Made by a program: the position numbers and the translations under genes
DNA from: Trichosphaerium sp. ATCC 40318
Taxonomy: Eukaryota > Protista > Tubulinea
DNA length: 64,000 bases
Direction: 5' to 3'
Assembly: GCA_038496445.1 (NCBI GenBank)
Contig: JALMLS010000277.1
Coordinates: forward strand, 186,001 to 250,000
Notes under the pieces: model-generated
Database searches by the model: none
What the model was told of the DNA's origin: nothing
Seen by the model: only the letters and a program-made list of their open reading frames with translations
Part shown: piece by piece, positions 13,501 to 54,067 of the stretch
How the letters are laid out: every line of letters starts with the position of its first letter
Numbering within the stretch: position 1 is the first letter of the stretch

Positions 13501-13629
13501 AAAAGTACTTAAACCCAGTTTTTGACAATCAAGTTAGCCGGACACAAATCCAATTGATCAACAAAACCAACAACTCCTTAACAACAGCTAAAAAACACCA
13601 CTAAATAACAAACATCAAAGCAACACGTA

Positions 13630-28495: not shown

Positions 28496-29924
28496 ATGGC
28501 TAACGAAAGTACACTCCCAACAGTTTTCAACATGTTTCATCAACACAAAACCACTTTAACCTTTAAATACTCTCTAATACGCTTAAAGCATACGATGAGC
28601 TAGCTTTTTGCTGTTAACGCTCGTATAGCCGCTAAAATAGTTTACTTGCTACAAAAAGCAACTGACAAGCTAACTCTTACTTCAGTACACGCTTTGGTAA
28701 TAGACAACGGATCTGGGTGGTGCAAAGCTGGTTTTGCCGGTGATGACGCTCCAAGCGCTGTCTTCTCATCAGTAGTCGGCCGTGCATGTCACACCAGCGA
28801 AGGTGCTGAAAATAAGAAAGACTCGTACATCGGCGATGAAGCCCAATCCAAGCGCGACACCCTCTCATTGAACTACCCAATCGAACGTGGTATTGTCACT
28901 AACTGGGACGACATGGAGAAAATCTGGCATCATGCATTCTACAAAGAGCTAAATGTTGCCCCGGAAGAGCACCCAGTTCTCCTTGCTGAACCTCCATTAA
29001 ACCCAAAACCTAACAGGTACACACATCGTTATTTCGGCTTTCTTGATTTCGAAAAAAAACACTGTGAATTGTTGGTTTTTTTGACTTACTTGTTTGGTGC
29101 TTAGAGAAAAAATGACGCAAATTATGTTTGAGACATTCAACCTCCCGGCTATGTATGTAAGCAACCAGGCTGTACTTACTTTGTACTCTGCCGGACAAGC
29201 AGCGGGTACGTTACTGTCTTGATTGCAAAAGGCAAGTAACTAACTTGTTCTAATAGGTTTGGTTGTTGATTCTGGTTATGGTGTCACCCACGCAGTCCCA
29301 GTCGTTGATGGTTACGCACTACCTACGGAAACCACGAGTATGAATTTGGGTGGACGGGATATCACCAATTACTTGATGCAGATCCTCAGTGAGCGTGGGT
29401 TCGGATTCAGTGGTGATATCGAAAGTATTCGTGACATTAAGGAGAAACTCTGCTACGTTGCTCTTGACTTCGAGCAAGATATGAAGATAGCCGAAACATC
29501 ATCTACCCTTAACAAGTCATACACGCTTCCTGATGGTAAAGTCATACACATCAATAACGAACGCTTCAGATGCACAGAAGCCCTATTTAAACCAAGTTTG
29601 GTCGGGATGGAAGATGAAGGAATCCATAAGACCGCATACTACTCAATCATGAAGTGTGATGAGCTGCGTAAGGATATGTATGGTAATGTTATGCTTGTCG
29701 GTGGTACTACTATGTTCCCAGGTCTAGCTGAGAGGTTGCATAAGGAACTAGCTGCTCTTGCTCCTTCAGCCATGAAGATCAAGGTCATTCCTGAGAAAAA
29801 ACAATACTCTGCTTGGTGTGGAGGATCCATCCTTAGCTCCCTATCAACTTTCGGGCAAATGTGGATATCCAAAGAAGAGTATGATGAGTCTGGTCCAGCT
29901 ATTGTCAACAGAAAGTGCTATTAA
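28496..29924 (+). CDS. act: Divergent actin (4 exons)
   Basis: [66 protein letters not shown]. Confidence 0.93.
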
Positions 29925-30194: not shown

Positions 30195-31100
30195 CTAAAA
30201 TGGATCTGGTTCAATAATTACTTCACCGTCTATTAATGTAAAAGCTCCTGGACCTAGATACGTTTCAACCAGTACCTTATAGCAATCAACAAAGTCTTTT
30301 CCAAAATATGTCTTAAACAATGACTTAACATCATCTCCAATCTCTTCAAAAGATTCCTCTTCATTTGTACAAAAAGTAAAGCAACAGTACAATTCACTAC
30401 AATCCTTAGGTGTATACCACATAAACCCAGGACAACGAAAAGTTGCATTCCGTCTATAAAGCCTAAAAACAGCAAAAGCAGAAGAATCACGTGCAAAAAA
30501 AAAAATCTTAAAGTTGCAAGAAATATCATCATATACTCCTGGTTCTACATTAACATTATCACATACTAATGTATGACTTGTCTTATTTTCTTCTCTAGAT
30601 ATTTTATAGAATCCAATATCAGAACCAATCTTATCATTAGTAAAAAGAACATCTCCATCAAGTTCTTGACCTATTTTTCTGTTGACATAGTAAGTTTTTA
30701 ATGATGCCTTGTTACTGAACTCTCCAGGTACGAATGTCTTTATATGAGGCCAATTTAGTTGTATAGCAACAGCCCAGAAGTTCCTTGAAGATAGAATGCC
30801 GTTGAACCGTTTTGAAACCAATGGGATGTTTTTTAGAGTAGTATAGTTCAGATACGCAAATATGTACGTTAATATATCGTTTGGGACTAAGGATAACGAG
30901 AAATGACTTGGTTCAGTATCAATATCATTTTCATAGTCTTTCAAGACTTCCAATAGCGTAGATACGTACTCTGGGTTGGTAAGACGCTTTTTAACTTCTT
31001 TGTCGTGTATGCTGCGAACGATGCGTGTTAGATTGGTGACTGTATCATCATGCACACTCGCAATCTCTCTTTTGTGCCTTTTGGGGTATGGTAGGGTCAT
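30195..31100 (-). CDS. F-box protein (intronless, 301 aa)
   Basis: SLVPNDILTYIFAYL..IPLVSKRFNGILSSRNFW. Confidence 0.85.
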   Translation of the reverse strand: MTLPYPKRHKREIASVHDDTVTNLTRIVRSIHDKEVKKRLTNPEYVSTLLEVLKDYENDIDTEPSHFSLSLVPNDILTYIFAYLNYTTLKNIPLVSKRFNGILSSRNFWAVAIQLNWPHIKTFVPGEFSNKASLKTYYVNRKIGQELDGDVLFTNDKIGSDIGFYKISREENKTSHTLVCDNVNVEPGVYDDISCNFKIFFFARDSSAFAVFRLYRRNATFRCPGFMWYTPKDCSELYCCFTFCTNEEESFEEIGDDVKSLFKTYFGKDFVDCYKVLVETYLGPGAFTLIDGEVIIEPDPF

Positions 31101-31722
31101 TGTTTCGGACGGGCGCTTAACTACTTAAGGGCAAGAAGATTGTGGAAATGTTGCTTGTATTGATTATTTATAATGACAGTGTAGCCATATCGTCTTTGTA
31201 GCAGTGATCCCATGTATGACTGTTTTACTGAGAACCTGGCGCCTCTAAAGCACGCCTATTCAATAGCACTGACCCAACATAAAACGTGGTTTTGTATTTA
31301 CTTAGTCAACCATATTTTTCCGCTGCTCTGAAAAATACAACAGCGTTATGCACCAGTGAGCTGTCAACCTACAGGCATTTTCTGTAGTAGGATCTTATAT
31401 ATTTGTTATTAGTTTGAATTGCAGTACTTATAGGGGCATTTACTATTACAAGAGAATCTTTCTGCAAGTAGTGGATGAAAAAGAAACAAATATGTCACAC
31501 AATAGTCACTACTCACCTATAACTACCGTATATGATAGGTTAAGGTTTGTATTTTAAATGGAAGATCTTAAAAGAGATGCACAATAAGTACATGAAATGT
31601 AATTATCACAAAACAAATAATACGATCGCTTGTGATTGGATTTTCTTCTTTACTGGGATAATCAAACGATTGTGCATACAAAGATTATTTATGCGAGCGT
31701 ATTACACAGTGTTAAACTTGTT

Positions 31723-34700
31723 AATCACTTTCTTACAATCTTGGATAGTTTCGGCTTCTTTTTAGAATCATTTACTACTGCAACTGCCTTTCTTTTCACG
31801 TTTGTGGCTATTTATAGAAACAGTAAGTTCCCACGTGATTGATCATTTATAAACAAAAACTTTAAAAGCTGCGCACGCGAAACAGTGATGTAGAGAGTCT
31901 CCCTACCAATTGAACATAAATCAGTATCAAGTGGAAGTAATCTCGAATCGTTGCTTGTATAAAAGCTAACTTTCAAGTTTTGCAATTCTTCAGGCAAGAA
32001 TTTAGTTAGCGCTGAAACAGTATCACCAGGGTAAAATAATGTTCCAGCATTAGCAACATTATACTTTTTCTTAAATCCTTTCAGCACTAATGCTACTCTA
32101 CAATCTGAAATTTTAACAACGTTGCCTAGGCTTGATTTAGCTTACACTCAAATAAAGTAAAAGTGGTACTTTGCTTAAGTACTAATATATCTACCATCGT
32201 AATGTCACTGTCACGGCTATCATCTAATATTGTTGGCAGATGAAGTATGTCGGCACGAATACCGTCATATTCGAAAATAATGTTATGGATATTACTGTTA
32301 TATCCCCGCGCAGTCTTTAGCACACTTTCGTAATAGTTTCTATCGTTGACACTCTTAAAAAATCGAATTTCGTCAAGTGTTGCCTCAGTTGGGTTTGGCA
32401 TTACACCTGAATAATCCAATCGAATACACTCTAAACCAAACAGTAAGCTTTGTTACTCCACTCCTCTAAATACGTACTTCGAAGAAAGGGTATGATAACA
32501 TTATTTTTAGCATCAAAGTTAATGCAGTACCTTCCATGTGGTAGTACTGCAGCTAAACCGATCTTGGCTGAATAATCAATAATCTTTTTTTCCTTGTCAT
32601 ATTGGATTGGCAGTGTTCTCAGCTCAATATAGTCGAAAGTCATACAGTGATTGAACTTGTTTCTGCCTCTTCAAAATCCTTAGCCTCACCTATTATACAG
32701 TCGCTTATGTTCGCGAAGAGCCAAGATCTCTCAGGTTCAAGTTGAGCCAGAGTTTTATGTTGGTCATCTAATGTAACTAGTTGGCCAAAGTCCACCAACA
32801 GTGGTTCGAAGTAGGAGAATCCTAGGAAAGTTACATCACACTGGGGTTTTAAGGAATATATGCGTACGGTATTGTGAGTCAGTACCCACCCAGTTCAAAT
32901 ACTCGGTTGTAGGAATATCTCCTGATTTGAAATACTTGTACATCTAGAATCGTAGAGTAAGTTACCTTGGTTTAAACAAACAGGACAAGAGGCGTACACG
33001 TGATGTTAGAAATTGTTCGAGATCTTTCTCTCCTACGATAATCACCTCTGTAAACGCATCTGGGATAATGAGATTTGTAGAGTTGTTGTTCTTGTTTAGA
33101 ATCAATCCGTCTTTGAGTTTCTTGGAAAGGATTGCAGCGATAATAATTGCAACACGTTTTAGGCCCTTCTCAGGTGTTCCTTTTAAGTGTACTTTATTAA
33201 TTTCTTCTTGTATGTCAGCAAGGGTTCTTGCACTACTTCCTTGCTAAAAGTAAAGCTTAGACCTTACAATAAAATGATGCTAGCGCAAGATAGGGACAAT
33301 TCATAGCACGAGTTTCTCACAGGTGGAATGTGTCTTACAAGTATCTTATAGTTGCCAATAAACGTGGGTGGATACCTTGGTTTGAATAAAAAGTTCGTAT
33401 TCGGAGTTCTTTATCATCATGTCGAATGTATCTGGTGGTGATAGTTTAGTAAAGTACGCATGAAAGATTGAAATTACGCACTAGACTTTTCACCAGGGAT
33501 ATACAAGCCGCCAGCCGCTGCTCTCCACAGCCGACAAAATTCCTCTTTGGTTATACAACCTTTAGATTTCAACTCTTCACTATCCTCCGTGTCTTTTGTT
33601 GCCGATCCCGCATCCTGGACTTTTGGCAATGACTGCGGCTAAAATTGAGGTAAGCGGAAGGTGATATTCTTATTTTTAAATAAGTCGTACTATGATTGTT
33701 GGATCAAATTGTATGGCTTTTTGATTCTAGTAACTTGTGAACCTAAAGTCGGAAACAATTACAACGTACCTCAAGACATGATCCTTTAAAGAGAGAAAAT
33801 ATACCACCCAATGTAGCTTCAGGATGTCTTTGTAGCCATTCGTACATGTACGTTGAAAACCTCCAGTCTACAAACCATTCCATTCGTTTCCCTAACATTT
33901 AGGTTAAATACGAACTTCGCCATTTACTTTACATTTTAAAAATCCTGTTTGTGCTATTTGATTTAGTCTTGTCTTATCCAGTTCATGCTGAATGATGATT
34001 GATTTAATAACGTTGTTACCAAAGTGGTTGAAAGACACTGAATAACCTTGAGCTGACATGAACTCCATTATCAATCTAGGTATCTTAACCTTCATGGATT
34101 GTACGCCATTGATTGTACTAGAAATGAATACCACTGGAGCCAAGTTTAAAATGCGATGCAGAGGAATCTAATAAACAATTAATACTTTTGTAAACTATAA
34201 CCATATTGCAAAGTACCTCTTTGAGTATGCAGTTTTTGTTCTTTGTTCGCAACTCAAACTTTGTTTTGGTGCTATCAAATACATCTTGAGTTATAGGCAA
34301 CATAAATGCTTCTAATACCAACACTTTAGAAACAAATCTGACAGCAGCATCCCAAAAATAACACATTGCATTTGTATTATTGTTTGCAAGCATTTCACCA
34401 TAAGCATCATCTAAAAGCCTAAAAAACCTGCATGAGTCTTCCTTATACGATAGAAACACAGCACCTTGTGGCATCAACTGGTTGCCCCTTTCTATTCAAG
34501 AGTATGGCAGCGATGTATCCTATGAAATAATTGACCATTCGCGGTAAACCAGCTACAATCAAGGTAAGATTAAAAGAACAAAGGTGGGTTTTACCTGTTT
34601 TATCATGTATTCCCTCAATCAATTTTTTTAAAATAGGCTTATCCAGTGAATCAAGTGCTGCATATAATTGTCTTTGAGTGTCGGTACTTTTATACGGTTT

Positions 34701-35878
34701 TACTATCTCTATTTGTTCTTCTATAGCTTTCAATGTATCTTCAGTACTTAGTGGCTACCAGTGATTAGGGCTTCATAGAAAAAGTATATTCGTTAAGTAC
34801 TGGTAACACTAGCCACATTGACTGTGAAGGAAGAATTGATTGAGCATCATTCGGCAAGAACAGGGTCTCATGAACAGAGAATAGCGGCAATAGGTTCTTT
34901 CCTCCAACGCTGTGTGGTTGTAGCATAAGAGACCATAGGAAGTTAAGTGTTTTACACTTTGAATTGTGCACCCTTCCGTGTTGCAGAATTTGATTGAATT
35001 CGTCAATCATTACAACAACAGAAAAGTTATTCGTCTTCCAATACTCCTCGAATACCTCCTCTACACAACTTTAAAACAATTTTAAATAGTAACATGTACC
35101 TATGGTAGGTTTATTATTACCCAGGGCAGCTTGAATAGCGTGTAATATAAACACATGTGAATCTAGAGCGAGTTTTGTTGATAAGTTAAAGGCAGTTTGT
35201 TGAACAACAGATATTTACCTTCTGCACCACAGCTCTTCTGACCATTGATGAAAATGAACTTAGAGTGTAGCAAATGATCCTTTACCCACTGTTCTAAATC
35301 TTGATTTTCGTTAAAATGACCATCAGCAACCAATGTGCGCATGGACTCCTCAAGATTCTTCAAAAATTGTGTTTTCCCTGTAACGTAGCTATTACCATCA
35401 AAATAAATTTCGAGATGTGATTCATACCACTTCCAAAATATTGGGCTAGAAACGGCACAGACAAGTTTGCCGTTTCACAAGAGTCAAGTCTATTGTTCCT
35501 GTATGTGTACCAGTGTCTAGCAAGTTTCCGATATTGATTGATGCGAGGCCTCAATTGAAAAGGGAGGCTACCTTTTACTCAAGTTAAAACGCGTACATTA
35601 GTGTTAATGAATACCTATGCAGCATTGTAGGAACGATATAGACATTGTAGTGGTATAGTTATAGTTTATTCCTGAAGTGTAATACCAATAAAAAGAAGCG
35701 GTGCGAACGTTGTAGCAATTGGATTTAAGCTTTTTTAAATAACTGAGTTAAGTCAACGTTCTTTCAATCAAATTACATTCTGGTAACAAGGCATGTAAAG
35801 ATACTCAAGAGGAATAAACAAACACGTATATAGTAGTATGGGTACAACGACTTAGTGTCTTGATTGATTACCAACAAC
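31723..35878 (-). repeat. Arm 1 of ~4.15 kb inverted duplication
   Basis: Its reverse complement matches ~49905-54067. Identical ORFs appear in both arms (MIDEFNQILQHG.., MAPVVFISS..). Homology stops 2 nt after the stop codon. Confidence 0.95.
31725..35645 (-). CDS. Crinkler-like P-loop NTPase + PD-(D/E)XK nuclease with variable C-terminal domains, copy 1 (apparent 1-nt deletion near 32661)
   Basis: Spliced Walker A LAQYFGSG|KT, Walker B VVVMIDEF, nuclease motif YIPGEKS|NTFDMMIK..LFIQTK, C-terminal KRK..KKKPK NLS. Confidence 0.7.
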
Positions 35879-35922
35879 CTCAAAGAAGAAAACTCAACAA
35901 CCTTTTATTCGGATTTGTTTAT

Positions 35923-36801
35923 TTACTGTCTTTGTATCTGCTGACAAAATAACACATCAACAACTATACCTAGCTTCTCTATATCAAGGTATGCACACCT
36001 ACGAATCCTTTTCTTGAGCATACCAAGTCTTTTAAGGGTCCATGTAGCACGCCTGATATCTCGTACAGCAATCTTTGCATACTTTGGAGTGTAATCTTGA
36101 GTATCACAATCTGATCTGAAAATTGTAAAATCAGGACCAGCGCCAAGTTGCCACGTGCATTTTCTGCTATCTGTAGTACATGCTGTTTTCGTGTCGTCAG
36201 TACCGGTAACAGGAGAGAACAATCTAGAGTAGTTGATTACAGCATTAGGCCAAGCATTTGTGGATATTGCAACTCCAACTTCTTCGGCATACTGAACACC
36301 AAGGGTTCCTCCGTTACTTCGAAGTAACCTGTTCCAAAGTAATAACCGTACATTACTAGCGTCAAAGAAGAAGTAATCCGTAAAAAAAGTAAGCATACCA
36401 CCACTGAAGATATCATCAAAATCAAGTAAGTTCGTATTAGTAAAAGTAGGTAAGTCAAGTCTGAAGAATGATAAATTTCTTGATGCCAGTCCATCGAAAA
36501 GATTCGTGATATTATCACCGACTTGCTGGAATGATACACCTCTTATATCACGAATGATTTCAAAGTTTACGTTACCAGCACTGAAACCACCGCTGACAAA
36601 ACCTCCGAAATCTGCGAAAGGAAAAGCTACTGGTAATCCAAGAACTTTTGTAAAAAAAGCATGTGTTTTATTCAGTTGCTCCAATGTAGCATTAGGTCCG
36701 TTCAATAGAAAGTGGTCTATTTGTTCAACTACAGCTTGTGACTTTGTAATTAAACAAAGCAAAATAAATGCTATAGAAAACAATAGAGAAAGAGTACGCA
36801 T
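35923..36801 (-). CDS. Secreted glyoxalase/VOC-like protein (intronless)
   Basis: Signal peptide, then IDHFLL..FFTKVLGLPVAFP..GGFVSGGFSAGNVNFEII, resembling bacterial Glyoxalase_3-like proteins. Confidence 0.7.
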   Translation of the reverse strand: MRTLSLLFSIAFILLCLITKSQAVVEQIDHFLLNGPNATLEQLNKTHAFFTKVLGLPVAFPFADFGGFVSGGFSAGNVNFEIIRDIRGVSFQQVGDNITNLFDGLASRNLSFFRLDLPTFTNTNLLDFDDIFSGGMLTFFTDYFFFDASNVRLLLWNRLLRSNGGTLGVQYAEEVGVAISTNAWPNAVINYSRLFSPVTGTDDTKTACTTDSRKCTWQLGAGPDFTIFRSDCDTQDYTPKYAKIAVRDIRRATWTLKRLGMLKKRIRRCAYLDIEKLGIVVDVLFCQQIQRQ

Positions 36802-37334
36802 GATAATCTCAACACGTGGGTTTGGTTAGGATGTGAACGTGATTTTTTGGTGGAGGTTTAAGTTAACTGTTGGACTTAACTTTGGCTCCGGCATGATTGT
36901 TTGCCCGCAATCTGCTAATGCACTTGGTATTTAATATAACTGGATACCCGAATTCTCAAATATTCACCTTGTCTGGGTAACTTTTGGCTGAACAAACTGT
37001 TACTTAAGCAAAACGTGATTTGACGATTTTCTTGTGTTTATGGTAACAGGTTTACCCGAGAAGGTAATTTATGTTTGAAAATTACAACAAAAACCAAGCA
37101 GCATTCACCAAATATCAAATAGGTGAGGGGTGTTTATGGGTTTTCTGTGATTTAATTTTAACACAGTTCGGGTGTGGGTTTGCTTTCAACTTTGGACGTC
37201 CTGACACTAGCATAAATTTAACCCTAGGCGATAGTATGCTTTCCTTTGGCAATAATACGATGAGTATTTCTCACGACAGATAATTTATTTGTATCAAAAA
37301 AGGAAGAATGAAAAATCAAGTTATTGTACTGGTT

Positions 37335-38474
37335 CTATGCCTTGGCATTATTAACAACTTTTGCATTTGGATTTGGTGTACTAGGTGCAACCTCTGGTTT
37401 TTTATGTTGTCGTCTAAGCATTTGTTAATACATGTCATAGCGAAAGCAATTTCTCAAAAAAACCAGAAAACTGTTTAAAATGAAAACAAACTACAAAAAA
37501 GAAAGTATCACATACCCCATAAGAACGCGCTCAAGTTGTAAAGGTGCTATAACCATAGGACAATATTTTGGCTCAATAGGATGAAGAGTACTACTTGCCA
37601 AAAGAATCTCACTAACAGTAAAGCGAGCGAATTCATCATCTTTGAACTGAGCAAGCACGTGCTTTATAGCGTCGCCCTTGTTTTAAATGGTAAATACCAA
37701 ACAATCTATGTATTCATATATACCTGTTCTGGCTTTATATACACATCTGACCAACGTGCAATAGTAATATGAGGACTCCAACGTTCTTCTTCTATCTCAA
37801 TTCCTGCTTCCTTCCATTTCGTTTGTAATTCTGAGTGAAGGGTATTTATTTCTTCTCTACCGTCTCCTATACCGAGCCATAGCTTGAAAGCTTCGTCAGA
37901 ATACCTTCATATACATTATAACATACCACTCGGGGCTTTGCTGGTCTTGGGAATACACCAACGCCTTTGATACCGACTTGAAAAGGTTTCATGTTTTTTG
38001 TTGTTTTAACCATGATTTCTGACGCTTTTTTAAAGGTTTCTGGCTATTACAGGTTAGCAAATAATGACTGAAGCGAGTGTCACTGCTTGTAAGCGTCAAA
38101 CCTCTTGTAATTTGGATCCAAAGTATTGAAGGGTAAGGTGAATGTTATACTCACTCGTCCAGTTGATTTTTTGGTTACTTGGTAGCTTTGAACGAAGATC
38201 GCTTTGTGTTCGTTTTATTCCTTCCATACAGTGCGCATTAGATGGCCACACGCCAACGAAATGCCTACCCGGCATCAATAGGTGTTACAGTGTCGGGCGA
38301 AATAATTTAACAATACTATTAACGTATTACGCGCCCCTGGTTCACTACGTACCTCGAAACTGAACCGCCATCATTTGCATAATGTCGCACTGAGGCGGAT
38401 GTAGAAGCTCTAGTACTACTAGTGGTAGTACAACTGCATGCCAAGCGATTACGTGATGCCACCCGTAAGAACAT
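37335..38474 (-). CDS. 2H phosphoesterase, ThpR/LigT (RNA 2',3'-cyclic phosphodiesterase)-like, with probable mitochondrial presequence
   Basis: RHFVGVW, NIHLTLQYFG, GVGVFPRPAKPRV, WSPHITIAR (two HxT motifs). Exon 1 MFLRVASRNRLACSC..SVRHYA is Arg/Ser-rich with no acidic residues. Confidence 0.85.
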
Positions 38475-38837
38475 TATGGACAATACAAACAGAAAAAAAA
38501 CAACGACTTTCAAAAAACAGCGAAATTTCTTATTTTATACATTAAACCACAACCACTTTGATCTATCCTACAATACAAATATGTTTTCTGGGCGAGGGAT
38601 GCTGTTTAGAAATGGTGAACTGCCAAGCCTCAACCAACGTTTTTTTTTTTTGAATGTGTTAAACTTTGGTTTTGTTGGCTTTTCTGGCGTCTAGAGATAC
38701 CACTTATTCAAACTGGTATTGCTGAACACTAGCTAGTATTTGTACATCATTGACGTGTGATGGTGCTCTTTGATAGTGGGTGATATGTTTGAAACATTGG
38801 TATTTTCTAATTGCAGCCCTTTGGACCAAAAACGAGA

Positions 38838-40218
38838 CTATGTTGATGGAGCTTCAACACATTTTCTAACAGCTTTTATGAGCCACCTACCAGCAAATTA
38901 TTAGCAACAAACAGCATGATAGTTTTTTTTTTTGAAGGTATGAACTCTAGAAAGTACCTTTGTTTACTTCGCTTCCCTATCAGCTTAAATCTATCCCAGT
39001 CCCATGAAACGTTGGGATAAACCAAACGCAATACTCGGTGATAATATCTAATAAAACCTCCTGCCCCAAAGTATTCAGCAAGTTGCTTCTGAGACACGTG
39101 ATACCTGTTTGACATAGACTCTATCAATAACAAAAATACAACAAAAAAAAAGAAAGAGGTTACCATGCATCCATGTTGCTTTCTTCATTAATGTCGAAAT
39201 GATGTGCCAGCTTCTCGAGAAATTTCCTCTGTGTACTCTTACTGAACCAGCAAGGTCTTACATAACGCTTAAGTTTAGGTCCTGAGTTCGGTGCCAAAGT
39301 ATTTAAAGCAAACTCAAGATCATGATTGTATCTAAAGAATATCTGTTTGTCAATACAAAACCCAACCTTCGTTCATGTAAATCAAGACATTACCTCTTTA
39401 CAATGGATCTCATTGCTGCATATTTACTACCAATAATATCAATCTTTTTCCAGTCATCAGCACAACAGACATTTAGTGTATCAGCAAGTCCATGTAGTGC
39501 TTGTTTTTGATTTTCTAAACTGTCCCAATATCCATTTGGAGCTGCTCTGTATCACTATAAATTATATCATAAATACAACTAATACGTACCTAAACAACCA
39601 CGGCTTCCAATCATACTCTGGATAAATTGTTTTGAGGGCATCGTACACAGAACCGTTGTGACTAAAAAAACGTTTCAACTTTCTTTTTTTCACAATTGCA
39701 ATAAAAATGTATTATTAAAGCTATCAGTGTTACTTACACGTTCACTGCTATGTTTCCACATGGTTGCTTTACAATTTCACGCAAAGAAACGTTGTACCAA
39801 GCGTCAAAAGTTCTGACTTTGAACTTCTTGCCAATGTCTTCGAAAAGCTGCCTTCTGTTCTTTAATGCATCCCAATGGCCATTCGGTATACCTCTTTGCG
39901 TTGTTAGGCATATTAGACGAGTTTGTAACAAACAGTACTTGAACAAGTGCGTCTTCCATTTAAAATTGGGATACAGCGTTGAAATACACTTAGGTATTGA
40001 TGCACCATAACTTGTAATGGTTTAGAGCGTTAAACGTTAAAAAGATAAACTAACAAGTAATCTACAATGTGACGCCCTCCAAGGTCAGATATGATAGGTC
40101 CTGATACTTTATACCAACCACTGGCTGTGCGAATTTTCAGAACTTGCGCACACTCGTCAAAGAACTGCCGTTGGTTCTCTATGCTCTTCCAGTATCCTTT
40201 AGCTCGCCTTACTAGCAT
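38838..40218 (-). CDS. Trp-rich tandem-repeat protein (about 4 repeats), same family as 25299..27741
   Basis: GYWKSIENQRQFFD..WYKV; PNGHWDALKNRRQLFEDIG..WYNV; PNGYWDSLENQKQ; ends W|YHVS..WDWDRF..KRSKQR|WL. Confidence 0.75.
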
Positions 40219-40684
40219 TGTCGCTTGTTAAACGTCAATATCATGGCAGGCAACTCTCAACGTAGGGTGTTACTATACACTAGTTAATTTGGCTATTAGG
40301 GAGAAAAGTCATGATTTGTTCAACGTCAAACTCATACTAGTCTTCGTAAACACATGAAAAGCACGTGCGTCTATGAAACTCAAAGCAATTATCATTCGCT
40401 TATCTTTTTCATCTACGGCCATGCAACCTGATGGCAGATGATACTTTAAGGCCTGCATAGCTCACATTTGAACGACAAATCAATATCGGGAATCTCTAGT
40501 CAATGCCTCCATCTGTTATACAATCACATGTCGATAGTTATTGTAATGTATTTATAAAAAAGTTACCATTTTAAGTGCAAAATAAACCATAAGTTGAGAA
40601 ATCAAACTCAGAAGTCTTAGTTTTTTATGTACAATTTCTTTCTTTTCAACATACTTAATGTTATTTCATTTTAACTCTTTATAA

Positions 40685-43600
40685 TCAATTTGATTTAGTA
40701 CTTTTATGTATAGATTCCAAAGATGAAAGAATCTACAAAGAATAAATAAACATAACAGAGCAACCCACAAAAACAGAAGAGAAATAATTGTAATATGAAA
40801 AAAAAAAACACAAACAAATACATACTCTATCACAAGAAGGACGTCTGATTTGCTGACCCGACCAACACTGTCCAATAAGTGATTTTAATTCAGGTAGCAT
40901 ATTCGCATCCATAGTAGGACGTAATCCTTCACTGGCCTATAAAAAACAAAGTGAGTAGTTGAAACTTGAGTTGTAATTCAATTAACAAATGAACTTATCG
41001 AAAAAAATACACGTGACTTGGCACGTGAAAAATCTTACCTGTACAAGAACTTGCATCTCCATTGGATATTGTTTTTCATACTCTTTAAAAGGACCTTCGT
41101 AATGTCCTTTTATTTGACGTGTGAAAAGCTCCCAAAGAATAATACCTAAAACAAAAGGTGTCAACTTTCTTTCTTCAACCTTTGTTTTGAAAAAGTGTTT
41201 GCTTTAATACGCACTTAGAGAGTATATATCACTCTTGATAGTAAATCCCTTGCACTCAAATACTTCTGGTGCAATACAAACAAAAGTACCACGACACTTC
41301 ATAAGAGTGTCTTGAAATGTATCAGTGTTGAACCGTGATAAACCGAAATCACAGATTTTAATTTCCCAATCTTCGTTAACCTTTTAAACATAATCAGTAT
41401 CCTGGCGTCATACTTGTAAGCAACGTACCAATAAATTCCTACTCTTTAAGTCTCGATGAAGTATTTGGGGCTTATGAGAATGGAGAACACGAAGAGCCTT
41501 TGTTGACTGAATGGCAAAAGAGAAAACCCTATCCAGAGTAAACTCTACTTCTGGATCTGCCAATACATCATAAAGACTTCCACGCTCACAAAACTCCATC
41601 ACAAGACATAAACGCTCTTTTACACAAGCACCATAAAATTGTACAGCATTAGGGTCTCTTAGAGAGCTATTAAACAAAGGTTAGTCAAAATATAAAACAA
41701 AAGTATTGTCTTGTAATTTAGTACTTACACAAAGACTTCAAATTCACGTTGGAACTCGTCTTTATCCATTGCGTTATTTAATACTTTAATAGCGACTATA
41801 TTTTCTCCCATAAGAAGACCTTTGTATACAGTACCTACATGTAAGGTTAGAAGAAATTCAACGGACGGATTTATTGAAAACAAATGTTACGAACCTGAAG
41901 TGCCATCACCAAGTTGGTTATTAAATTCAATATCTTCTGGCTCAATCTCCCAAGTCCATGGTTTGTCATCTCCTGGACTCCTTGGAGATGGTGCGACAGT
42001 AACTGGCGCTTCCATTGGTTTACGTTTATCAATAGCCTTCTTCAAATAAAAGCGTATAGAACTAAAGACTAATTAATGTTTCTGTTATTAAAAACTACAC
42101 TTGCCTTTCTTTCTGTCTGAGATGTTTCCTCCTTAGAGCATTCTCTCTTTTCAGCTGCATGGATTCATCCTCTTACATAGATATTAATAAAAAAACAAAA
42201 ATAATCAGACAAACTTACTTAGTAGCTTGGTAGATGATGTTAAAATTGTTCTACAATGTGTCTCACTAGGTATAAGCTTGGCTAGTATTTCAGGTGTCAC
42301 ATCCTCCAATGTGTACAAGAACAAATCATTCCTAACAAACAGAGGTAGGTACTCAATAAGTCCAATATCTTTCAGCCAATCAGATAACGCTATAATCCCA
42401 TCAGCAACAAGAATCCTCAAAGAGAAGAAAAAAAATTAAAAAAAAATAAAACGAACCCAAACAATCATTAATACGTCCTACAATCATCTTAAACCCTTGT
42501 TCTTGAGCCAATTCACATGGTGTCTTTCCTTCCGCGCCTAATTGCAAAATTACAAATCAAAAGAAACACCCTGTCAGCAAAAAAAAAGCGTACTTTTGAT
42601 CGTAACATCAGCTCCACAAACCAAAAAGTACGTTACTAAATCTTCACGTCCTAGTCTCACAGAATAGTGAAGTGGTGCTTCTCCCTTTTTATTCACTATA
42701 CAAACAAGAAGTAAGCATTTAAAAAGAAAATGTCAAAAGAAGCTCAAAAAGCTAAAATCCCAAAGAAGTATTTGGGAAAAAAACGAACCTATGTCCGGAT
42801 CTGCTCCGTTGTTGAATAAAATATCAAACACTGTATGTTTAAGAGACATATTAAATACAGCTAAGTGCATTGGTGTCTCTCCATAATCATTTTGAGCGTT
42901 GATTTGTGTTTTACGAGAAAGAAACAATTCGAAAGGTTCAGTCGAATTCGATTTATAGTTTTTGCATAGATAATGAAATGCTGTATTGCCACGTTTGTTC
43001 TTCATCATAACATCAATATCAGGATGCTCAAGAAGTATTTTAAGACACTTTACTGTCTCTTCTGTCCAGAGCTTACGTATAACAGCGTTATGAAGAACAG
43101 TCTCGCCATTATCATCTTGTCTATTTAGACCATATATTTTTTTCTTACCAGCAAGAATAGATTCTATTTTCTTTACATTGGACTCTTGCACAGCCTTGAA
43201 AAGCTGGTTCATTGATTGCTTTGTAGCATCCATTAGCATTTCTTTGAGTTTACGATCATTTTTTGTCCTACCCTGCAAAGTTGTTGTCAAAACAAATCAA
43301 AAAAAAACGAGAAAAAAAAAGTATTAATTTTTGACATTGTTCTAACTTGGCATGGTATTGTTCAAATATAACCACATATTATGACCATACCAATGTGCGA
43401 ACAGGGAAAATGAATGCGCGTATATGAAGGTCACCAGTTACATCATCTGTCAACTTGATTGGTTCAAGCTCTAAAGCATTGTGTTAGTTGCAAATGGGTT
43501 TTTCACTTCGTGTACCTAACCACAAATCTACCTCCTTGCCTGGCTCTATATCATCTAGGTCGAGCTCAACCATACCCATACGATCGTCCTTGAACGTTTT

Positions 43601-44123
43601 TAGATACAGAGAAAACGTAATTCGCGGGTTTTGTTCTAACGAACCTGACTAAACTTATCCTTGTCGAATACTTTAAATACTATCTCAGTAACGCGTTTGG
43701 GGTTGTATTTACTACGTTTATCATAGCTAATTAGCAAAACGTATCTTATTACAAGTTACGTACAATTCGAAGACTTCCACCTGCGATCCGATACCCCAAA
43801 CAGGATTTAAAGTGCAATTAATTGTTTTGGTCTTTTTTTTAAATTTGCCAACTGTGACAGTTACGTATGGATCAGATAACCCATTACTATATGTATGAGC
43901 GCCATTAAAAAACAAAAATACGCACTCGTCCATAGAGATCAAGTCACGCCCCTCAATTACTACAGAACGCAGTCAATATCCGAAAGGTTGAATACTAGTG
44001 TAAAATGGAGTTCGCCCGTTAAACGTTGGGTCTCTACCAATTAAAGAATGTGCTGGTGGCCCATACACTACGCCTTCGCCTCATACCTTCTACACGAATA
44101 CGCCGGTAGGTCTTCATACTCAT
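40685..44123 (-). CDS. C2 - ankyrin repeat - SAM - TKL protein kinase
   Basis: C2 [13 protein letters not shown]; ankyrin GETVLH, GNTAFH, GETPMH; [16 protein letters not shown]; kinase [25 protein letters not shown]. Confidence 0.9.
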
Positions 44124-44311
44124 GAGCTTACTGCGAGAGCTCAATATCCTACTCTTAACACTAACCTTACTCATCTAGCCCCAATCAACCAAGCTCGTGA
44201 CGTGATGAAAAGTTAGACTTCTAAAGAATTCTGTCGATTTTTTTGCGTCAAATATTGTTTTATGATTTTTATTACTGTACATTGGTTTTTTAAAAGTTTT
44301 TAAGTAAATAC

Positions 44312-45721
44312 TCACGCGCCAAATCTTGTGCGAAACATTTTAAAAAATGACGCTAACTCTTGTTCCACATTATGTACACCAGTAGCTGTCACAGTAGGTC
44401 TAGAACCTAGTCTATCATACTCCCTAATGAAACTAATTAACAATGTGATTTCGACAGTGTAGCTTACCTCTTCATTGTTGGATCTGTCAGTGTGGTGTAA
44501 GCTTGATTAAGTACTTTAAACGCCTCTGCTGCACCTTAATAAAATATAAGCAAACGAACAAATGAACAAGGAAGTATACCTGGTGCTTTGTTTCTATCTG
44601 GGTGTACGTGCAATGCAGCTTTTCTAAATTTCTTTTTCATTTCAGCAGCCGACTCATTGCGTGTAACCTTCAGCACTTGGTAAAAGTCGGTGCAATCAAG
44701 CATGGTGTCAACCTCGCGCTTTTGATCAACAGTATACTCGTCATTTGTTTGTGCAATATCAATATACTTACGGCGTGGTAATTGCACTATACTACCAACA
44801 TCAACCTACACAAAAGTCAATAAGATACGGTGTAATCCCTTTTTTTTTATCGTACCACAGGTGGTGCCTCACGTGCTTCCTTTAACTTTTCTGCCTTTAA
44901 ACGAGCAGCCTCTTCTTTGAGTTTTGCAGTTTTTGCATTCAGTTGAGCAACATACCGGCTTGTCTCAGCTTGAGAATTTCGGAGTTCAGCTGTATTAAAA
45001 TGGATCTTATACATAGGCTCAAACCTCCTCTTTTTAGCAGAAGATTTCGGTGGTTGAGTTCTAGATCCTCCTGTGTTGAGCTTCGTTGATGATGGCTTCT
45101 GAGGAGCAAGATTAACAAATCTGTACACCCGAGGTTGTGTTGACTTCCTTGGTGCTGGTGATGACCGTTTAGGTTGTGACCTTTGTTTTGGCTTATTATG
45201 GGAACTATTACTCATTGATGCATTTGACGTAAGAGGCGAGGAATAGTTTGAAGTGTAGCTTGTTTTTGGTTTCAGTGCACTTTTACGGATTTTAAACGGG
45301 TTTCGTATTTTATCTTCTACCGACGTGAAACGTGCTGAGGGACTAGGCGGTGCTAAAATAAAATTAAAATGACACGTAAAAAAATTTTCAAGCGTGCCAT
45401 GTACTCTTTGCTTTGTACTACGCGTGTAAGTTGGAATAGTGCTTGTGTATTGAGAACTAGGCCATGAGAAAGCCTCTGTAGTTGTAGATTGCCGTTGAGA
45501 CTCTCCTCGTTTTAGTAGCTCGTCTGTAGCGCGCTCAGGGTCACCACCTAACAATTGTGTTTAGCAGTTATTCTACATTGCCGCTATTATGTACCACATG
45601 ATGTAAGAACTTCGTGAAGCGTGTCTAATGGTATATTGGGAAATGAGGCTTTCAGAAACTAGAGAATGATTAACTACGCTATCGTTTGTGCTGATCTACG
45701 CACCTCCCATTTATCAGACAT
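44312..45721 (-). CDS. CUE-domain + C-terminal J-domain (DnaJ) protein
   Basis: N-terminal FLKASFPNIPLDTLHEVL..GGDPERATDELL (CUE FP..LL); DFYQVLKV..KKKFRKAALHVHPDRNKAP..AFKVLNQAY (HPD). Confidence 0.85.
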
Positions 45722-45863
45722 GAAGCTTCATACAATAGTCGGTTTTTGTTGAAAATAAAAAACTGGTAGAATTCAGAAATAATTTAAAAAAAGGTGAAAA
45801 CATCGCCACATTGAACTCAGACCGGCAAGAGTAATAAATAGCGTATTTTACACAAGCAAAAAG

Positions 45864-46755
45864 ATGTTAGGATACAAAGGAATGCGCTGTGCCATGCGAT
45901 ACTCAAATACGCATTGTAAGAGGTCTAACATCGCAAAGATGAATGTTACTGTATCAAACAAAAACACAAGGTTCGAACGACCTACTTTCATAACCTTACG
46001 CAGTAAAGGGTAGTTTTAAGAGCAAAGCAGACATTTTCAGCGCCATTGAGGCAGCATTTCATTTTCTCGGACTTATCGCTTAGACGCCACTCGAAACTCG
46101 GCTCCTTTAACACCTCTCGTTGGTATTGTACGTTACATCATAATGTTAGCGTTGTAATAAATGACAGGTTCAACAGCACCTTCAAACGAGGCTAGTATAG
46201 GACAAGTAGAACCACAAATGGCAGTACGCGCTTCAGTATTCAATACCATGTTATCTTAACCTCTTCAAACCAGGCAGTATTTACTTGTAAAAAGTGTAAA
46301 ACGCGAACAGCCAAAACTTTCTCAAAAGAATCTTACACTAGTGGAATTGTCATTGTTACATGCCCAGGGTATGACACTACAAAAAAAAAATTATTACAAG
46401 TTGTCCAACATATTGCTAGGTGTAAAACAAATCATCTCCTGGCAGATAATATAGGATGGTTTCATGATAATAATAAAAATGTTGAAGATTTCTTAAAAGA
46501 ACAAGGAGAACAATACAGAAAAGGTTTGTATAGATTTAATTAGTACATGTGCTGATCTTAGTCTTACCAATTAATTCGTTCTTAGGTAAGCTCGGAGATA
46601 TACAGATATCAGCAAAAGAGTTTGACATGGTAAAAAAGAGCTTTGTCGAACGTGTTGAACAAATACCTCGGTTAAAGACACAAATTGGTGAGAAGCCATT
46701 GGCAGATGCAAAAGCGGTTGAGAATAAGGAGAAAAATGATGCAGTTACTGAATAA
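45864..46755 (+). CDS. DNLZ: DNL-type zinc finger, mitochondrial Hsp70 escort (Zim17/Tim15/HEP1)
   Basis: FTCKKCKTRTAKTFSKESYTSGIVIVTCPG|CKTNHLLADNIGWF; basic N-terminal presequence. The start is approximate. Confidence 0.9.
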
Positions 46756-47029
46756 ATATGTTTGTTGTAAATACGTGTTATTTAACGTCGCGAGATGACG
46801 CGAAAAACGCACAAACCATTCTTAAAAGGTGACATTTGAGATTTTTTTTGTAGACGTCTTAGTCCGCCGTAGTTATTACACGAAACGTACCAGTCACGAA
46901 AACGTCACTAAAAATTAGTTGCAAACTACAAGTCTTTATAATGCTTCTCTACGCTTAAATATTACAATTCATGCGCATTTTTTCGCTTTATAAGCGGTTT
47001 GATGAATTTTATCTGCAATTCGCTATTTA

Positions 47030-47075
47030 TGACGTGGCGAAACCATGACTTAACAGACTTAACACTGTGACGTGT
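47030..47075 (+). promoter_or_regulatory. UPRE-like bZIP sites upstream of BiP
   Basis: TGACGTGG at 47030-47037 and TGACGTGT at 47068-47075, within 75 nt of the BiP ATG. Confidence 0.6.
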
Positions 47076-47101
47076 CTACCAAACAAACAGAAGCAACCAT
47101 C

Positions 47102-49674
<2,573 letters not shown>

Positions 49675-49904
49675 GTCGTCTTTATTTTTTTTATTGTTCC
49701 AAGACTTGCAATTTTTTCTCTTTGAAATATTTTTTTTTGTAAACCAAAGAGGAAAGTTGTTTGTCTTCAGATTGTACCATTGGCAATAAATATTTGCTAT
49801 AAAGTAATCGCTGGTGTATCTTGTTTTTTTAGTACAGACGAAAGTCGGCTTACCTTGGTTGCGTCCACATTTTGTGCTTTTATTAGTATGTTCTTAATTG
49901 CCAT

Positions 49905-52900
49905 GTTGTTAATCAATCAAGACACTAGTCGTTGTAACCCATAGTATATATACACCGGTGCACTGTATTAACGGGTGTTTATTTATTCCTCTTGTGTATC
50001 TGTACATGCCTTGTTACCAGAATGTAATTTGATTGAAAGAACGTTGACTTAACTCAGTTATTTAAAAAGAGCTTAAATCCCAATTGCTACACAACGTTCG
50101 CACCGTTTCTTGGTATTACACTTCAGGAATAAACCATAAGTATACCGCTACAATGTCTATATCGTTCCTACAATGCTGCATAGGTATTCATTAACACTAA
50201 TGTACGCGTTTTAACTTGAGTAAAAGGTAGCCTCCCTTTTCAATTGAGGCCTCGCATCAATCAATATCGGAAACTTGCCAGGCACTGGTACACATATAGG
50301 AATAATAGACTTGACTCTTGTGAAACGGCAAACTTGTCTGTACCGTTTCTAGCCCAATATTTTGGAAGTGGTATGACTCACATCTCTTAATTTATTTGAT
50401 GGTAATAGCTACGTTACAGGTAAAACACAATTTTTGAAGAATCTTGAGGAGTCCATGCGCACATTGGTTGATGATGGTCATTTTAATGAAAATCAAGACT
50501 TAGAACAGTGGGTAAAGGATCATTTGCTGCGCTCTAAGTTCATTTTCATCAATGGTCAGAAGAGCTGTGGTGCAGAAGGTAAATATCTGATGTTCAACAA
50601 CTGCCTTTAACTTATCAAAATCGCTCTAGATTCACATGTGTTTATATTAAAAGCTATTCAAGCTGCCCTGGGTAATAATAAACCTACCATAGGTACATGT
50701 TACTATTTAAAATAATTTTAAAGTTGGGTAGAGGAGGTATTCGAGGAGTATTGGAAGACGAATAACTTTTCTGTTGTTGTAATGATTGACGAATTCAATC
50801 AAATTCTGCAACACGGAAGGGTGCACAATTCAAAGTGTAAAACACTTAACTTCCTATGGTCTCTTATGCTACAACCACACAGCGTGGGAGGAAAGAACCT
50901 ATTACCGCTATTCTCTGTTCATGAGACCCTGTTCTTGCCGAATGATGCTCAATCAATTCTTCCTTCACAGTCAATGTGGCTAGTGTTACCAGTACTTAAC
51001 GAATATACTTTTTCCTATGAAGCCCTAATCACTGGTAGCCACTAAGTACTGAAGATACATTGAAAGCTGTAGAAGAACAAATAGAGATAGTAAAACCGTA
51101 TAAAAGTACCGACACTCAAAGACAATTATATGCAGCACTTGATTCACTGGATAAGCCTATTTTAAAAAAATTGATTGAGGGAGTACATGATAAAACAGGT
51201 AAAACCCACCTTTGTTCTTTTAATCTTATCTTGATTGTAGCTGGTTTACCGCGAATGGTCAATTATTTCATAGGATACATTGCTGCCATACTCTTGAATA
51301 GAAAGGGGCAACCAGTTGATGGCACAAGGTGCTGTGTTTCTATCGTATAAGGAAGACTCATGCAAGTTTTTTAGGCTTTTAGATGATGCTTATGGTGAAA
51401 TGCTTGCAAACAATAATACAAATGCAATGTGTTATTTTTGGGATGCTGCTGTCAGATTTGTTTCTAAAGTGTTGGTATTAGAAGCATTTATGTTGCCTAT
51501 AACTCAAGATGTATTTGATAGCACCAAAACAAAGTTTGAGTTGCGAACAAAGAACAAAAACTGCATACTCAAAGAGGTACTTTGCAATATGGTTATAGTT
51601 TACAAAAGTATTAATTGTTTATTAGATTCCTCTGCATCGCATTTTAAACTTGGCTCCAGTGGTATTCATTTCTAGTACAATCAATGGCGTACAATCCATG
51701 AAGGTTAAGATACCTAGATTGATAATGGAGTTCATGTCAGCTCAAGGTTATTCAGTGTCTTTCAACCACTTTGGTAACAACGTTATTAAATCAATCATCA
51801 TTCAACATGAACTGGACAAGACAGGACTAAATCAAATAGCACAAACAGGATTTTTAAAATGTAAAGTAAATGGCGAAGTTCGTATTTAACCTAAATGTTA
51901 GGGAAACGAATGGAATGGTTTGTAGACTGGAGGTTTTCAGCGTACATGTACGAATGGCTACAAAGACATCCTGAAGCTACATTGGGTGGTATATTTTCTC
52001 TCTTTAAAGGATCATGTCTTGAGGTACGTTGTAATTGTTTCCGACTTTAGGTTCACAAATTACTAGAATCAAAAAGCCATACAATTTGATCCAACAATCA
52101 TAGTACGCCTTATTTAAAAATAAGAATATCACCTTCCGCTTACCTCAAGTTTAGCCGCAGTCATTGCCAAAAGTCCAGGATGCGGGATCGGCAACAAAAG
52201 ACATGGAAGATAGTGAAGAGTTGAAAGCTAAAGGTTGTATAACCAAAGAGGAATTCTGTCGGCTGTGGAGAGCAGCGGAAGACGGCTTGTATATCCCTGG
52301 TGAAAAGTCTAGTGCGTAATTTCAATCTTTCATACATACTTTACTAACTATTACCACCAAGATACATTCGACATGATGATAAAGAACTCCGAATACGAAC
52401 TTTTTATTCAAACCAAGGTATCCACTCATGTTTATTGGCAACTATAAGATACTTGTAAGACACATTCCACCTGTGAGAAACTCGTGCTGTGAATTGTCCT
52501 TATCTTGTACTAGCATCATTTTGTTGCAAGGTCTAAGCTTTACTTTTAGCAAGCAAGTAGTGCAAGAACCCTTGCTGATATACAAGAAGAAATTAATAAA
52601 GTACACTTAAAAGGAACACCTGAGAAGGACCTAAAACGTGTTGCAATTATTATCGCTGCAACCCTTTCCAAGAAACTCAAAGACGGATTGATTCTAAACA
52701 AGAAAAACAACTCTACAAATCTCATTATCCCAGATGCGTTTACAGAGGTGATTATCGTAGGAGAGAAAGATCTCCAACAATTTCTAACATCACGTGTACG
52801 CCTCTTGTCCTGTTTGTTTAAACCAAGGTAACTTACTCTACGATTCTAGATGTACAAGTATTTCAAATCAGGAGATATTCCTACAACCGAGTATTTGGAT

Positions 52901-54067
52901 TGGGTGGATACTGACTCACAATATCGTACGCATATATTCCCTTAAAACCCCAGCGTGATGTAACTTTCCTAGGATTCTCCTACTTCGAACCACTGTTGGT
53001 GGACTTTGGCCAACTAGTTACATTAGATGACCAACATAACCCTCTGGCTAAAATTGAACCTGATTTCACAGATTTTCTCTTTGCGAACATAAGCGCCTGT
53101 ATATTAGGTGAGGCTAAGGATCTTAATCGGGAAGAAAACAAATTCAATCATTGTATGACTTGCGAATATATTGAGCTGAGAACACTGTCAATCCAATATG
53201 ACAAGGAAAAAAAGATTATTGATTATTCAGCCAAGATCGGTTTAGCTACAGTGTTACCACATGTAAAGTTATGCAAAAACTTCGATGCTAAAAATAATGT
53301 TATCATACCCTTTCTTCGAAGTACGTATTCAGAGGAGTGGAGTAACAAAGCTTACTGTTTGGTTTAGAGTGTATTCGATTGGATTATTCTGGTGTAATGC
53401 CAAACCCAACTGAGGCAACACTTGACGAAATTCGATATTCAGAGAGTGTTAAGTATAGAAACTTTTATGAAAGTGTGCTGAAGACTGCGCAAGGATATAA
53501 CAATAATGTCCAAAGCATTATGTTCATATGTGGAAATGCTGAGGGCACGGAAATTGCAAAAACAGCACTCACGTGGCAGGAGAAAAATAACATCACGCTA
53601 TTAGATGTATTCGTACATAAGAAAAGTACTCTCTTTTAATTTAGTTTGGACTGAAGCTAAAACTCAAGCATAGGTTTAGAAATTTCAGTTTGTAGAGTAA
53701 TTTTAGAACCAGTAGGTTTTGAGAAAACGTATCCGGTATTTACCAGTGTTGGAAATATATTTTACCCTGGTGATACTGTTTCAAAGCTAGATAATTACTT
53801 ACCCGAAGAATTGAGAAACAAAGTCAGTTTTTATGTTGACATCTTTCACTCGAATGAAAGATTACTTCGACTTGATACTGAATTATGTTCGCTTGGTAAG
53901 GAGACCCTAACCATCGCCTATTCATGTACACAAGCTTTTATTATAAATGTCACCACGTGGGAACTTAATGTTGTTTTCTATTTAGCCAAAAAAGTAAAGA
54001 GAAAGGCAGATACGGTAAATGATTCTAAAAAGAAGCCGAAACTATCCAAGATTGTAAGAAAGTGATT
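49905..54067 (+). repeat. Arm 2 of ~4.15 kb inverted duplication
   Basis: Inverted match to 31723-35878. Confidence 0.95.
50153..54065 (+). CDS. Crinkler-like P-loop NTPase + PD-(D/E)XK nuclease with variable C-terminal domains, copy 2
   Basis: Same motifs as copy 1. The frame is open where copy 1 is shifted (REENKFNHCM). Ends KVKRKADTVNDSKKKPKLSKIVRK*. Confidence 0.72.

Follow-up and report, generated by a model that had tools for sequence, protein, structure and literature searches.

A 64-kb stretch of the genome of Trichosphaerium sp. ATCC 40318, hereafter the window, contains two inverted copies of one orphan gene, c2 on the + strand and c1 on the - strand. The copies are nearly identical over most of their length, strongly diverged in a segment near the 3' end and identical again in the final codons. 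Silent divergence jumps along the gene; its 5' and 3' parts therefore differ in age, which selection at the protein level cannot bring about, and this points to gene conversion, not to selection alone. The pair is probably an old inverted duplication that has been homogenised by recurrent, patchy interlocus (non-allelic) gene conversion, with one 3' stratum left unconverted. An earlier sequence-only reading of the window had seen in the same segment a hypervariable C-terminal cassette, shaped by diversifying selection or cassette exchange.

Divergence along the gene pair

When the window is compared with itself by BLAST, a single long repeat is returned, inverted, which aligns 31699-35825 with 54094-49975 at 92.3% identity over 4167 columns. 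Its arms, mapped by self-BLAST, a MAFFT pair alignment and a coordinate map, lie head to head on one contig, 14.1 kb apart:

31723..35825, - strand: repeat arm 1, with c1, inverted relative to c2
49975..54067, + strand: repeat arm 2, with c2 and 178 nt of 5' flank

The spacer between the arms (35826-49974) is unique sequence with other genes inside, including an ankyrin-repeat open reading frame (ORF) and an Hsp70/BiP-like C-terminus. Homology of c1 and c2 stops 2 nt past the stop codon on the 3' side, and beyond the arms identity is at background. An assembly foldback artefact was rejected as the origin of the arms, as spacer and flanks are unique.

Likelihood segmentation of the c1/c2 pairwise alignment sets the following block borders, given in c2 coordinates, where dN and dS are replacement and silent substitutions per site and Ts/Tv is the ratio of transitions to transversions:

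49975-53039: block 1, 2.4% mismatch
53040-53283, + strand: block 2, intermediate, in exon 13; 12.6% mismatch, dN 0.108, dS 0.096, Ts/Tv 0.76
53284-53436, + strand: block 3, low divergence, 153 nt, reaching from the last part of exon 13 through intron 13 into exon 14; 1.3% mismatch (98.7% identity)
53437-54014, + strand: block 4, the high-divergence island; 27.9% mismatch plus indels (c1 equivalent 32361-31776)
54015-54067: block 5, the tail; 0% mismatch over 53 nt (c1 31775-31723)

The near-identity of the first ~3 kb, introns included, was thus correctly noticed by the sequence-only reading, and the limits it gave for the divergent region (53030-53990 in c2, 31790-32770 in c1) and the peptides it quoted match the two copies. 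The region is not uniformly diverged, however, as the nearly identical block 3 lies within it. The 5' 3 kb is itself uneven, with strata of 3.7%, 0.9% and 3.3% (chi-square p = 0.017), and the longest identical run there, 439 nt, covers intron 6 and part of intron 5. Block 2 is a patchwork in which tight clusters of multi-nucleotide changes and small indels stand between identical stretches, as expected of patchy heteroduplex repair, and its Ts/Tv is low as in old sequence. At least five levels of divergence in one 4-kb pair argue for repeated patchy conversion over an old duplication, not for a single recent duplication.

By element, identity is 94.7-100% in exons 1-12 and 90-100% in introns 1-13, then 89% in exon 13, 70% in exon 14, 58% in intron 14, 69% in exon 15, 62% in intron 15 and 88% in exon 16. 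The island runs from midway through exon 14 to the first part of exon 16, taking in introns 14 and 15 and all of exon 15, and its introns are diverged like its exons (58-62% vs 69-70% identity). One part of it differs most between the copies:

53527..53625, + strand: most variable patch, at the end of exon 14; ~24-30% amino-acid identity between c1 and c2, unalignable at the DNA level

This patch is also the least conserved part against a distant third paralog (17-35% amino-acid identity). It appears to be intrinsically weakly constrained and is probably the linker ahead of a predicted ubiquitin-like (Ubl) domain. The tail, whose identity the sequence-only reading had recorded as about 50 nt, consists of 17 basic-tail codons, the stop codon and 2 nt, and is enclosed by a block diverged by 28% and a non-homologous 3' flank; the chance of 53 identical bases beside such a block is ~3e-8.

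The contrast between the gene parts extends to silent sites and introns:

5' 680 codons: dN 0.014, dS 0.036-0.047, dN/dS 0.29-0.39 (four methods); intron mismatch 0.031
Exon 13: dN 0.11, dS 0.09-0.10, dN/dS 1.1-1.2 by NG86 and maximum likelihood
Island (second half of exon 14 and exon 15): dN 0.40-0.45, dS 0.32-0.44, dN/dS 0.9-1.4 (four methods)
Island introns: mismatch 0.30, plus 19 gapped columns

Between the 5' part and the island, the difference at pooled silent sites rises about nine-fold, from 3.7% to 31% (Fisher p = 6e-30). Ts/Tv drops from 2.0 to 1.1 between the two; this fall, with all substitution types present, is what an older divergence of the island would leave. The C-terminal region evolves under a different regime from the 5' part, and the contrast in dN/dS between the 5' and 3' parts is significant (Fisher p = 0.003). 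Since the split of c1 and c2, replacement changes in the island have kept roughly the pace of silent ones in each copy. Compared with the third paralog, the C-terminal dN/dS is at most 0.3, a value to be read as an upper bound because dS is saturated.

The third paralog serves as an outgroup for the pair:

C220:18500-28499, gene at about C220:21800-25850, - strand: third family member, 30-68% protein identity by exon

It is distant (dS saturated), lies on another contig and has its introns at the positions found in c1 and c2; over the island exons its amino-acid identity to them is 35-44%. Private changes in the two island lineages number 40 vs 40 nucleotides and 9 vs 14 residues, so that neither copy can have imported its 3' end recently or have been a pseudogene for long. 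All three C-termini align end to end with conserved intron positions and are homologous versions of one architecture, not unrelated alternative modules.

Searches for other versions covered the 70-Mb, 642-contig assembly. Protein searches with the Walker-B exon, exon 13, both versions of exon 14 and exon 15 returned c1, c2 and the third paralog only, and no version of the variable patch matched anything but itself in DNA searches. No further C-terminal variants or spare cassettes were found in the assembly, and the family has three members only. The proposals of cassette exchange and of a polymorphic-toxin or NLR-like sensor are not supported by these results. Two observations that the sequence-only reading had itself named as speaking against its proposal were both made: in the island, introns and silent sites have diverged no less than replacement sites (intron p 0.30; dS 0.44 close to dN 0.40), and there are no further C-terminal variants.

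The reading frame is interrupted once, in c1:

32660..32662, - strand: A3 run in c1 vs A4 in c2 (53135-53138), a 1-nt deletion that shifts the frame of exon 13

An independent protein search of the assembly likewise divided c1 exon 13 over two frames. Past the frameshift, ~190 codons of c1 remain open and in phase with canonical splice sites, and the remaining exonic indels are all in frame; the A3 run is therefore either a very recent lesion or a homopolymer assembly error. The earlier statement that the divergent region keeps frame and intron positions accordingly holds for the intron positions, and for the frame it fails in c1.

Histories that could account for the blocks

The duplicated gene encodes Walker A/B motifs and a conserved central region, followed by a linker under weak constraint and, at the C-terminus, a predicted Ubl domain and a basic tail. 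Under recurrent conversion, the first ~3.1 kb would have been overwritten again and again, exons and introns alike, leaving 0.9-3.7% divergence, and two short stretches nearer the 3' end would have been replaced as well. The ~580 nt that precede the tail would have escaped since the copies stood ~0.4 substitutions per silent site apart, and in this unconverted part the linker and Ubl domain would have changed at about the silent rate in both copies with the frame kept. Inverted arms 14 kb apart, with identical runs of the length seen in the 5' part, are a suitable conversion substrate, and we infer that conversion rather than staggered duplication made the blocks. The island may persist because its own divergence prevents heteroduplexes from forming, perhaps with some help from selection. 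Duplicated genes with a mosaic of divergence, and with 'peaks of divergence', are on record as an outcome of gene conversion (PMC3924837; PMC3728101).

Several points weigh against this history. Orthologues from sister species were not found in protein, viral and metagenome searches, so the pair lacks the classical proof of clustering by species in the 5' parts and by locus in the 3' parts. The identical tail makes an awkward conversion tract, since 28% divergence adjoins it on one side and homology stops at the other; constraint at the nucleotide level, such as an RNA 3'-end element, may be the alternative to a tiny tract. A dN/dS of about 1 with a kept frame exceeds what is expected of sequence that is old but constrained, so relaxation or selection must be added. 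Lastly, the gene models that underlie the analysis are computational; one search for RNA sequencing runs listed none for this stretch.

The question of what must be added leads to a version in which selection for two C-termini, as neofunctionalisation or diversifying selection, actively holds the island apart on the same conversion background. Overwriting tracts would be removed and linked silent sites would hitch-hike, giving a 'peak of divergence', a model described for opsins and other duplicates (PMC3924837). The higher dN/dS of the island and exon 13, against the lower values of the 5' part and of the comparison with the third paralog, would agree with it, as would the equal change in both lineages and the near-identical sequence on both sides of the island. 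So would the kept frame, with 6/7 exonic indels in frame vs 1/5 intronic ones (Fisher p = 0.07), and a local window with proportions of replacement and silent differences (pN, pS) of 0.6 vs 0.33. However, that local excess has p ~0.06 before multiple-test correction and falls in the patch that is unalignable as DNA, and the island's dN/dS overall is not significantly >1; of the diversifying selection proposed by the sequence-only reading, the different regime is what remains. Weak constraint suffices for a patch that is also the least conserved against a distant paralog, c1 has a frameshift upstream of the island, and there are just two variants. Kept frame and dN/dS of about 1 would fit selection for two C-termini or a relaxation of constraint on a module already weakly constrained; relaxed constraint is favoured because the variable patch is poorly conserved against the third paralog and the local pN excess is marginal. 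Active maintenance by selection is thus considered unlikely. Its functional extension, a two-variant specificity system in which gene conversion would keep the catalytic core of a lineage-restricted nuclear P-loop enzyme the same in c1 and c2 while selection would hold apart two linker+Ubl 'address' modules for different partners or targets, is given a somewhat smaller chance again.

Alternatively, the whole gene could have been duplicated recently, with divergence of about 2-3%, and an interior 3' segment then replaced from a lost or unassembled third paralog, which would be a true 'cassette exchange'. Near-identical flanks on both sides, the 53-nt tail included, and homology that stops exactly at the gene ends are what such an event would leave. 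Yet the 70-Mb assembly holds no donor and both island versions are unique in it, the other known paralog is too distant (saturated dS, island exons 35-44% identical), and the outgroup is equally far from c1 and c2. Levels of 0, 1, 3.5, 12.6 and 28% demand multiple events in any case, and this history is regarded as improbable. The frameshift in exon 13 could suggest instead that c1 is a pseudogene and the 3' divergence its decay. Set against this are the ~190 open codons past the frameshift with their canonical splice sites and in-frame indels only, and the intact 5' 680 codons of c1 with dN/dS of 0.29-0.39. Neutral simulations keep an open frame in only 3-12% of cases and give c1 a 0.06-0.12 probability of remaining free of stops. 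The c1 branch is not the longer one, and decay cannot give a 10-fold difference in intron divergence within one gene; decay is very improbable. As for targeted 3' hypermutation of a recently duplicated pair, in the manner of diversity-generating retroelements or somatic hypermutation, the localised divergence with introns included would be in keeping with it, but the substitution spectrum is ordinary, with all six classes, many indels and no bias towards adenine or any other base, and neither a template repeat nor a second copy of the variable stretch is present in the assembly. This last explanation is barely credible.

Gene models, predicted protein and neighbouring genes

Frames in the computational models of c1 and c2 were set by tblastn conservation with the third paralog, followed by a check of splice sites and ORFs:

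50153..54065, + strand: c2 coding model; 17 exons, 987 amino acids, intact, every intron GT-AG, 38-132 nt
50153-50183, 50227-50370, 50420-50578, 50630-50692, 50732-50991, 51039-51328, + strand: c2 exons, first part
51375-51576, 51626-51860, 51902-52023, 52155-52311, 52362-52417, 52550-52795, + strand: c2 exons, middle part
52850-52925, 52973-53320, 53368-53625, 53689-53925, 53986-54065, + strand: c2 exons, last part
31725..35645, - strand: c1 coding model; exon structure as c2, one frameshift in exon 13
53926-53985, + strand: intron 15 (60 nt, GTACAC..TTTAG); c1 counterpart 31876-31808 (69 nt)

In its intact 5' 680 codons, c1 differs from c2 by 20 amino acids. The 63-nt exon at 50630-50692 is concealed in an apparent 132-nt intron and was revealed through the third paralog alone. 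Intron 15 was overlooked by the sequence-only reading because 53926-53985 is open in frame in c2; it contains an in-frame TAA in c1 and the third paralog, is bounded by GT-AG at the same position in all three copies and differs between c1 and c2 by indels of 9, 2 and 2 nt.

The usual intron size is 43-54 nt. Very short introns of 38-41 nt occur at 50693-50731, at 51861-51901 and between exons 14 and 15 of the third paralog; short introns and splice motifs alike are deduced from conservation alone. Most donors read GTAYGY or GTGCGY, and the intron at 52312-52361 has a yeast-like ACTAAC branch motif. The long introns 52024-52154 (131 nt) and 52418-52549 (132 nt) may conceal small exons, as 50579-50731 did (50630-50692); a candidate of 24 nt lies at 52460-52483, and the third paralog has ~52 nt only at the position of intron 52418-52549. 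A model with a 38-nt intron keeps the 3' ORF of the third paralog intact, and this paralog's first intron after Walker A is ~160 nt.

The predicted protein contains the following elements:

50352..50436, + strand: Walker A (GSGKT), interrupted by intron 2 (50371-50419); motif and interruption both conserved in the third paralog
50773..50796, + strand: Walker B-like VVVMIDEF; VVVAVDEV in the third paralog
52364..52417, + strand: exon 10 stretch (FDMMIK..YELFIQTK), the 'nuclease' of the sequence-only reading; conserved in the third paralog
53689..53925, + strand: exon 15, predicted ubiquitin-like beta-grasp domain, 78 amino acids; 61% identical to c1 (32104-31877), 44% to the third paralog
53986..54065, + strand: exon 16, Lys/Arg-rich tail and stop codon; KRK-x10-KKKPK pattern resembling a bipartite nuclear localisation signal

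At the motif level, Walker A (GxxxxGK[ST]) and Walker B (hhhhD[DE]) of a P-loop enzyme are both present, an assignment that depends on the splice model, and the 'NTPase' label is a putative, motif-level one. The Walker-B exon gave weak leads to AAA in Pfam (E 0.29) and to AAA_35/ATPase_2/AAA_16/AAA_22 in the ESM Atlas (0.75-0.85). The 'nuclease' label is unproven. The supposed (D/E)xK motif reads D-x13-QTK in c1 and c2 and RTK in the third paralog, so that the acidic residue is replaced by Q or R, and no PD-(D/E)xK support came from Pfam, PADLOC and NCBIfam profiles exon by exon or from a PDB sequence search with exon 11. The exon-by-exon Pfam, PADLOC and NCBIfam scans, in which the exons are short, gave nothing significant, including no NACHT/NB-ARC match, and neither the Walker-B exon profile nor exon 11 had a match among PDB sequences. 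Structure prediction of exon 13 alone gave no fold (predicted local distance difference test score, pLDDT, 43); fragments of transposases from the ESM Atlas at 0.76 for this exon were dismissed as meaningless.

Turning to exon 15, the beta-grasp/Ubl-like character suspected by the sequence-only reading is well supported, and the final domain is predicted to fold as a ubiquitin-like beta-grasp. An AlphaFold2 model from the three-sequence alignment has pLDDT 84.7 and a predicted template-modelling score of 0.71. Foldseek matches include RAWUL, the Get5 UBL, the USP4/15 UBL, the Raf RBD and ubiquitin at template-modelling scores of 0.6-0.71, and the best VIA-align match is the Get5 UBL (Z 8.6, root-mean-square deviation 1.9 A over 68 residues). 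Nearly all of the best 50 Foldseek and VIA-align rows are Ubl, RBD or FERM-F1 domains, Atg12 among them. Because the Foldseek E-values are weak (8e-3 or worse), this is evidence of a shared fold, not of homology. The domain ends in ..TIAYS and is followed by the basic tail, without a C-terminal Gly-Gly, which makes it an integral Ubl domain and not a conjugatable modifier. The exon 16 tail is a putative bipartite nuclear localisation signal, as its residue pattern suggests.

No relative was found outside this genome, and the family is lineage-restricted, or orphan, in searches that used single exons of 82-150 residues and so had limited power. A HMMER profile of the three Walker-B exon sequences (89 positions, limited power) gave 0 matches at E <= 1e-3 among 1.84 billion representative proteins. 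One viral contig scan and two metagenome contig scans with different exons gave 0 confirmed related loci. A word search with the exon-13 ORF gave 0 matches under a length filter that makes it uninformative on long relatives.

Elsewhere in the window, an Hsp70 C-terminal exon at 49219-49674 (+) matches Pfam HSP70 (E 6e-19), ends in ...FDEL, resembling an endoplasmic reticulum retention signal, and is probably a BiP/GRP78 orthologue; it stops ~300 nt upstream of the c2 repeat arm. The region at 28646-29924 (+) / 30195-31100 (-) holds an actin gene of at least two exons (Pfam Actin, E 2e-37 and 4e-69) and, just past the 3' end of c1, a 301-amino-acid ORF with an F-box match (E 1e-6) and a weak PRANC match. 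A second duplication, 12951-14136 and 14780-16045, has its ~1.2-kb units in direct (tandem) orientation, and BLAST aligns them in three pieces at 80-90% identity; its ORFs 13630-14082 and 15199-15993 have no Pfam match.

Known systems and significance

Several known systems resemble parts of this gene. Prokaryotes possess architectures that combine an AAA-type ATPase with PD-(D/E)xK, among them AAA_14+DUF4143, ATPase_2+DUF234 and AAA-ATPase_like+PDDEXK_9. The likeness lies in Walker A/B, then a motif of the 'hxLxPLs..E' type and a downstream D...xK in a predicted strand. In contrast to these proteins, the (D/E) position is here Q or R, no profile, sequence or structure match to them was obtained, and the c1/c2 protein adds ~300 C-terminal residues that end in the predicted Ubl domain and basic tail. 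The predicted beta-beta-alpha-beta-beta-beta order of exon 15 superposes on the Get5 UBL, RING1B RAWUL, USP4/15 UBL and Raf RBD (Z 7-8.6, root-mean-square deviation ~2 A, 64-74 of 78 residues), but its sequence identity to them is at most 20%, and it has neither a Pfam match nor a C-terminal Gly-Gly.

Polymorphic toxins and NLR-like (STAND) receptors share with the pair a conserved P-loop N-terminal part joined to a more variable C-terminal part. Unlike in polymorphic toxins, the C-termini here are homologous versions of one domain set, without an array of spare cassettes. The difference from NLR/STAND receptors lies in a predicted Ubl C-terminus in place of LRR, WD40, TPR or ankyrin repeats, in three members in place of an expanded polymorphic family, and in the lack of a NACHT or NB-ARC profile match in the exon-level scans. 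Closer likenesses are found in partial concerted evolution, as in exon 5 of the human red/green opsins and in Tigriopus GOT1, where nearby paralogs have been homogenised around a bounded diverged segment with sharp borders (PMC3924837; PMC3728101). In the opsins, the introns flanking the diverged segment stay at low divergence (PMC3924837). The Trichosphaerium pair differs from these cases in its inverted arms, in the 3' position of its island and in the divergence of the island introns, which matches that of the exons.

Should selection be what keeps the island distinct, the pair would be a tractable case of neofunctionalisation under conversion pressure, and a two-variant system, if true, would be an immune-like or partner-discriminating arrangement in a protist. 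On the more probable history of recurrent conversion, the pattern is one familiar in duplicate-gene evolution, and the orphan family, with its Walker A/B motifs, predicted Ubl domain and basic tail, is a minor puzzle rather than a surprise. The pair offers a clean, well-bounded protist example of mosaic concerted evolution in which the introns act as internal neutral controls and the third paralog as an outgroup. It shows that a 'hypervariable cassette between identical flanks' can come from conversion history, not from a diversity-generating system.

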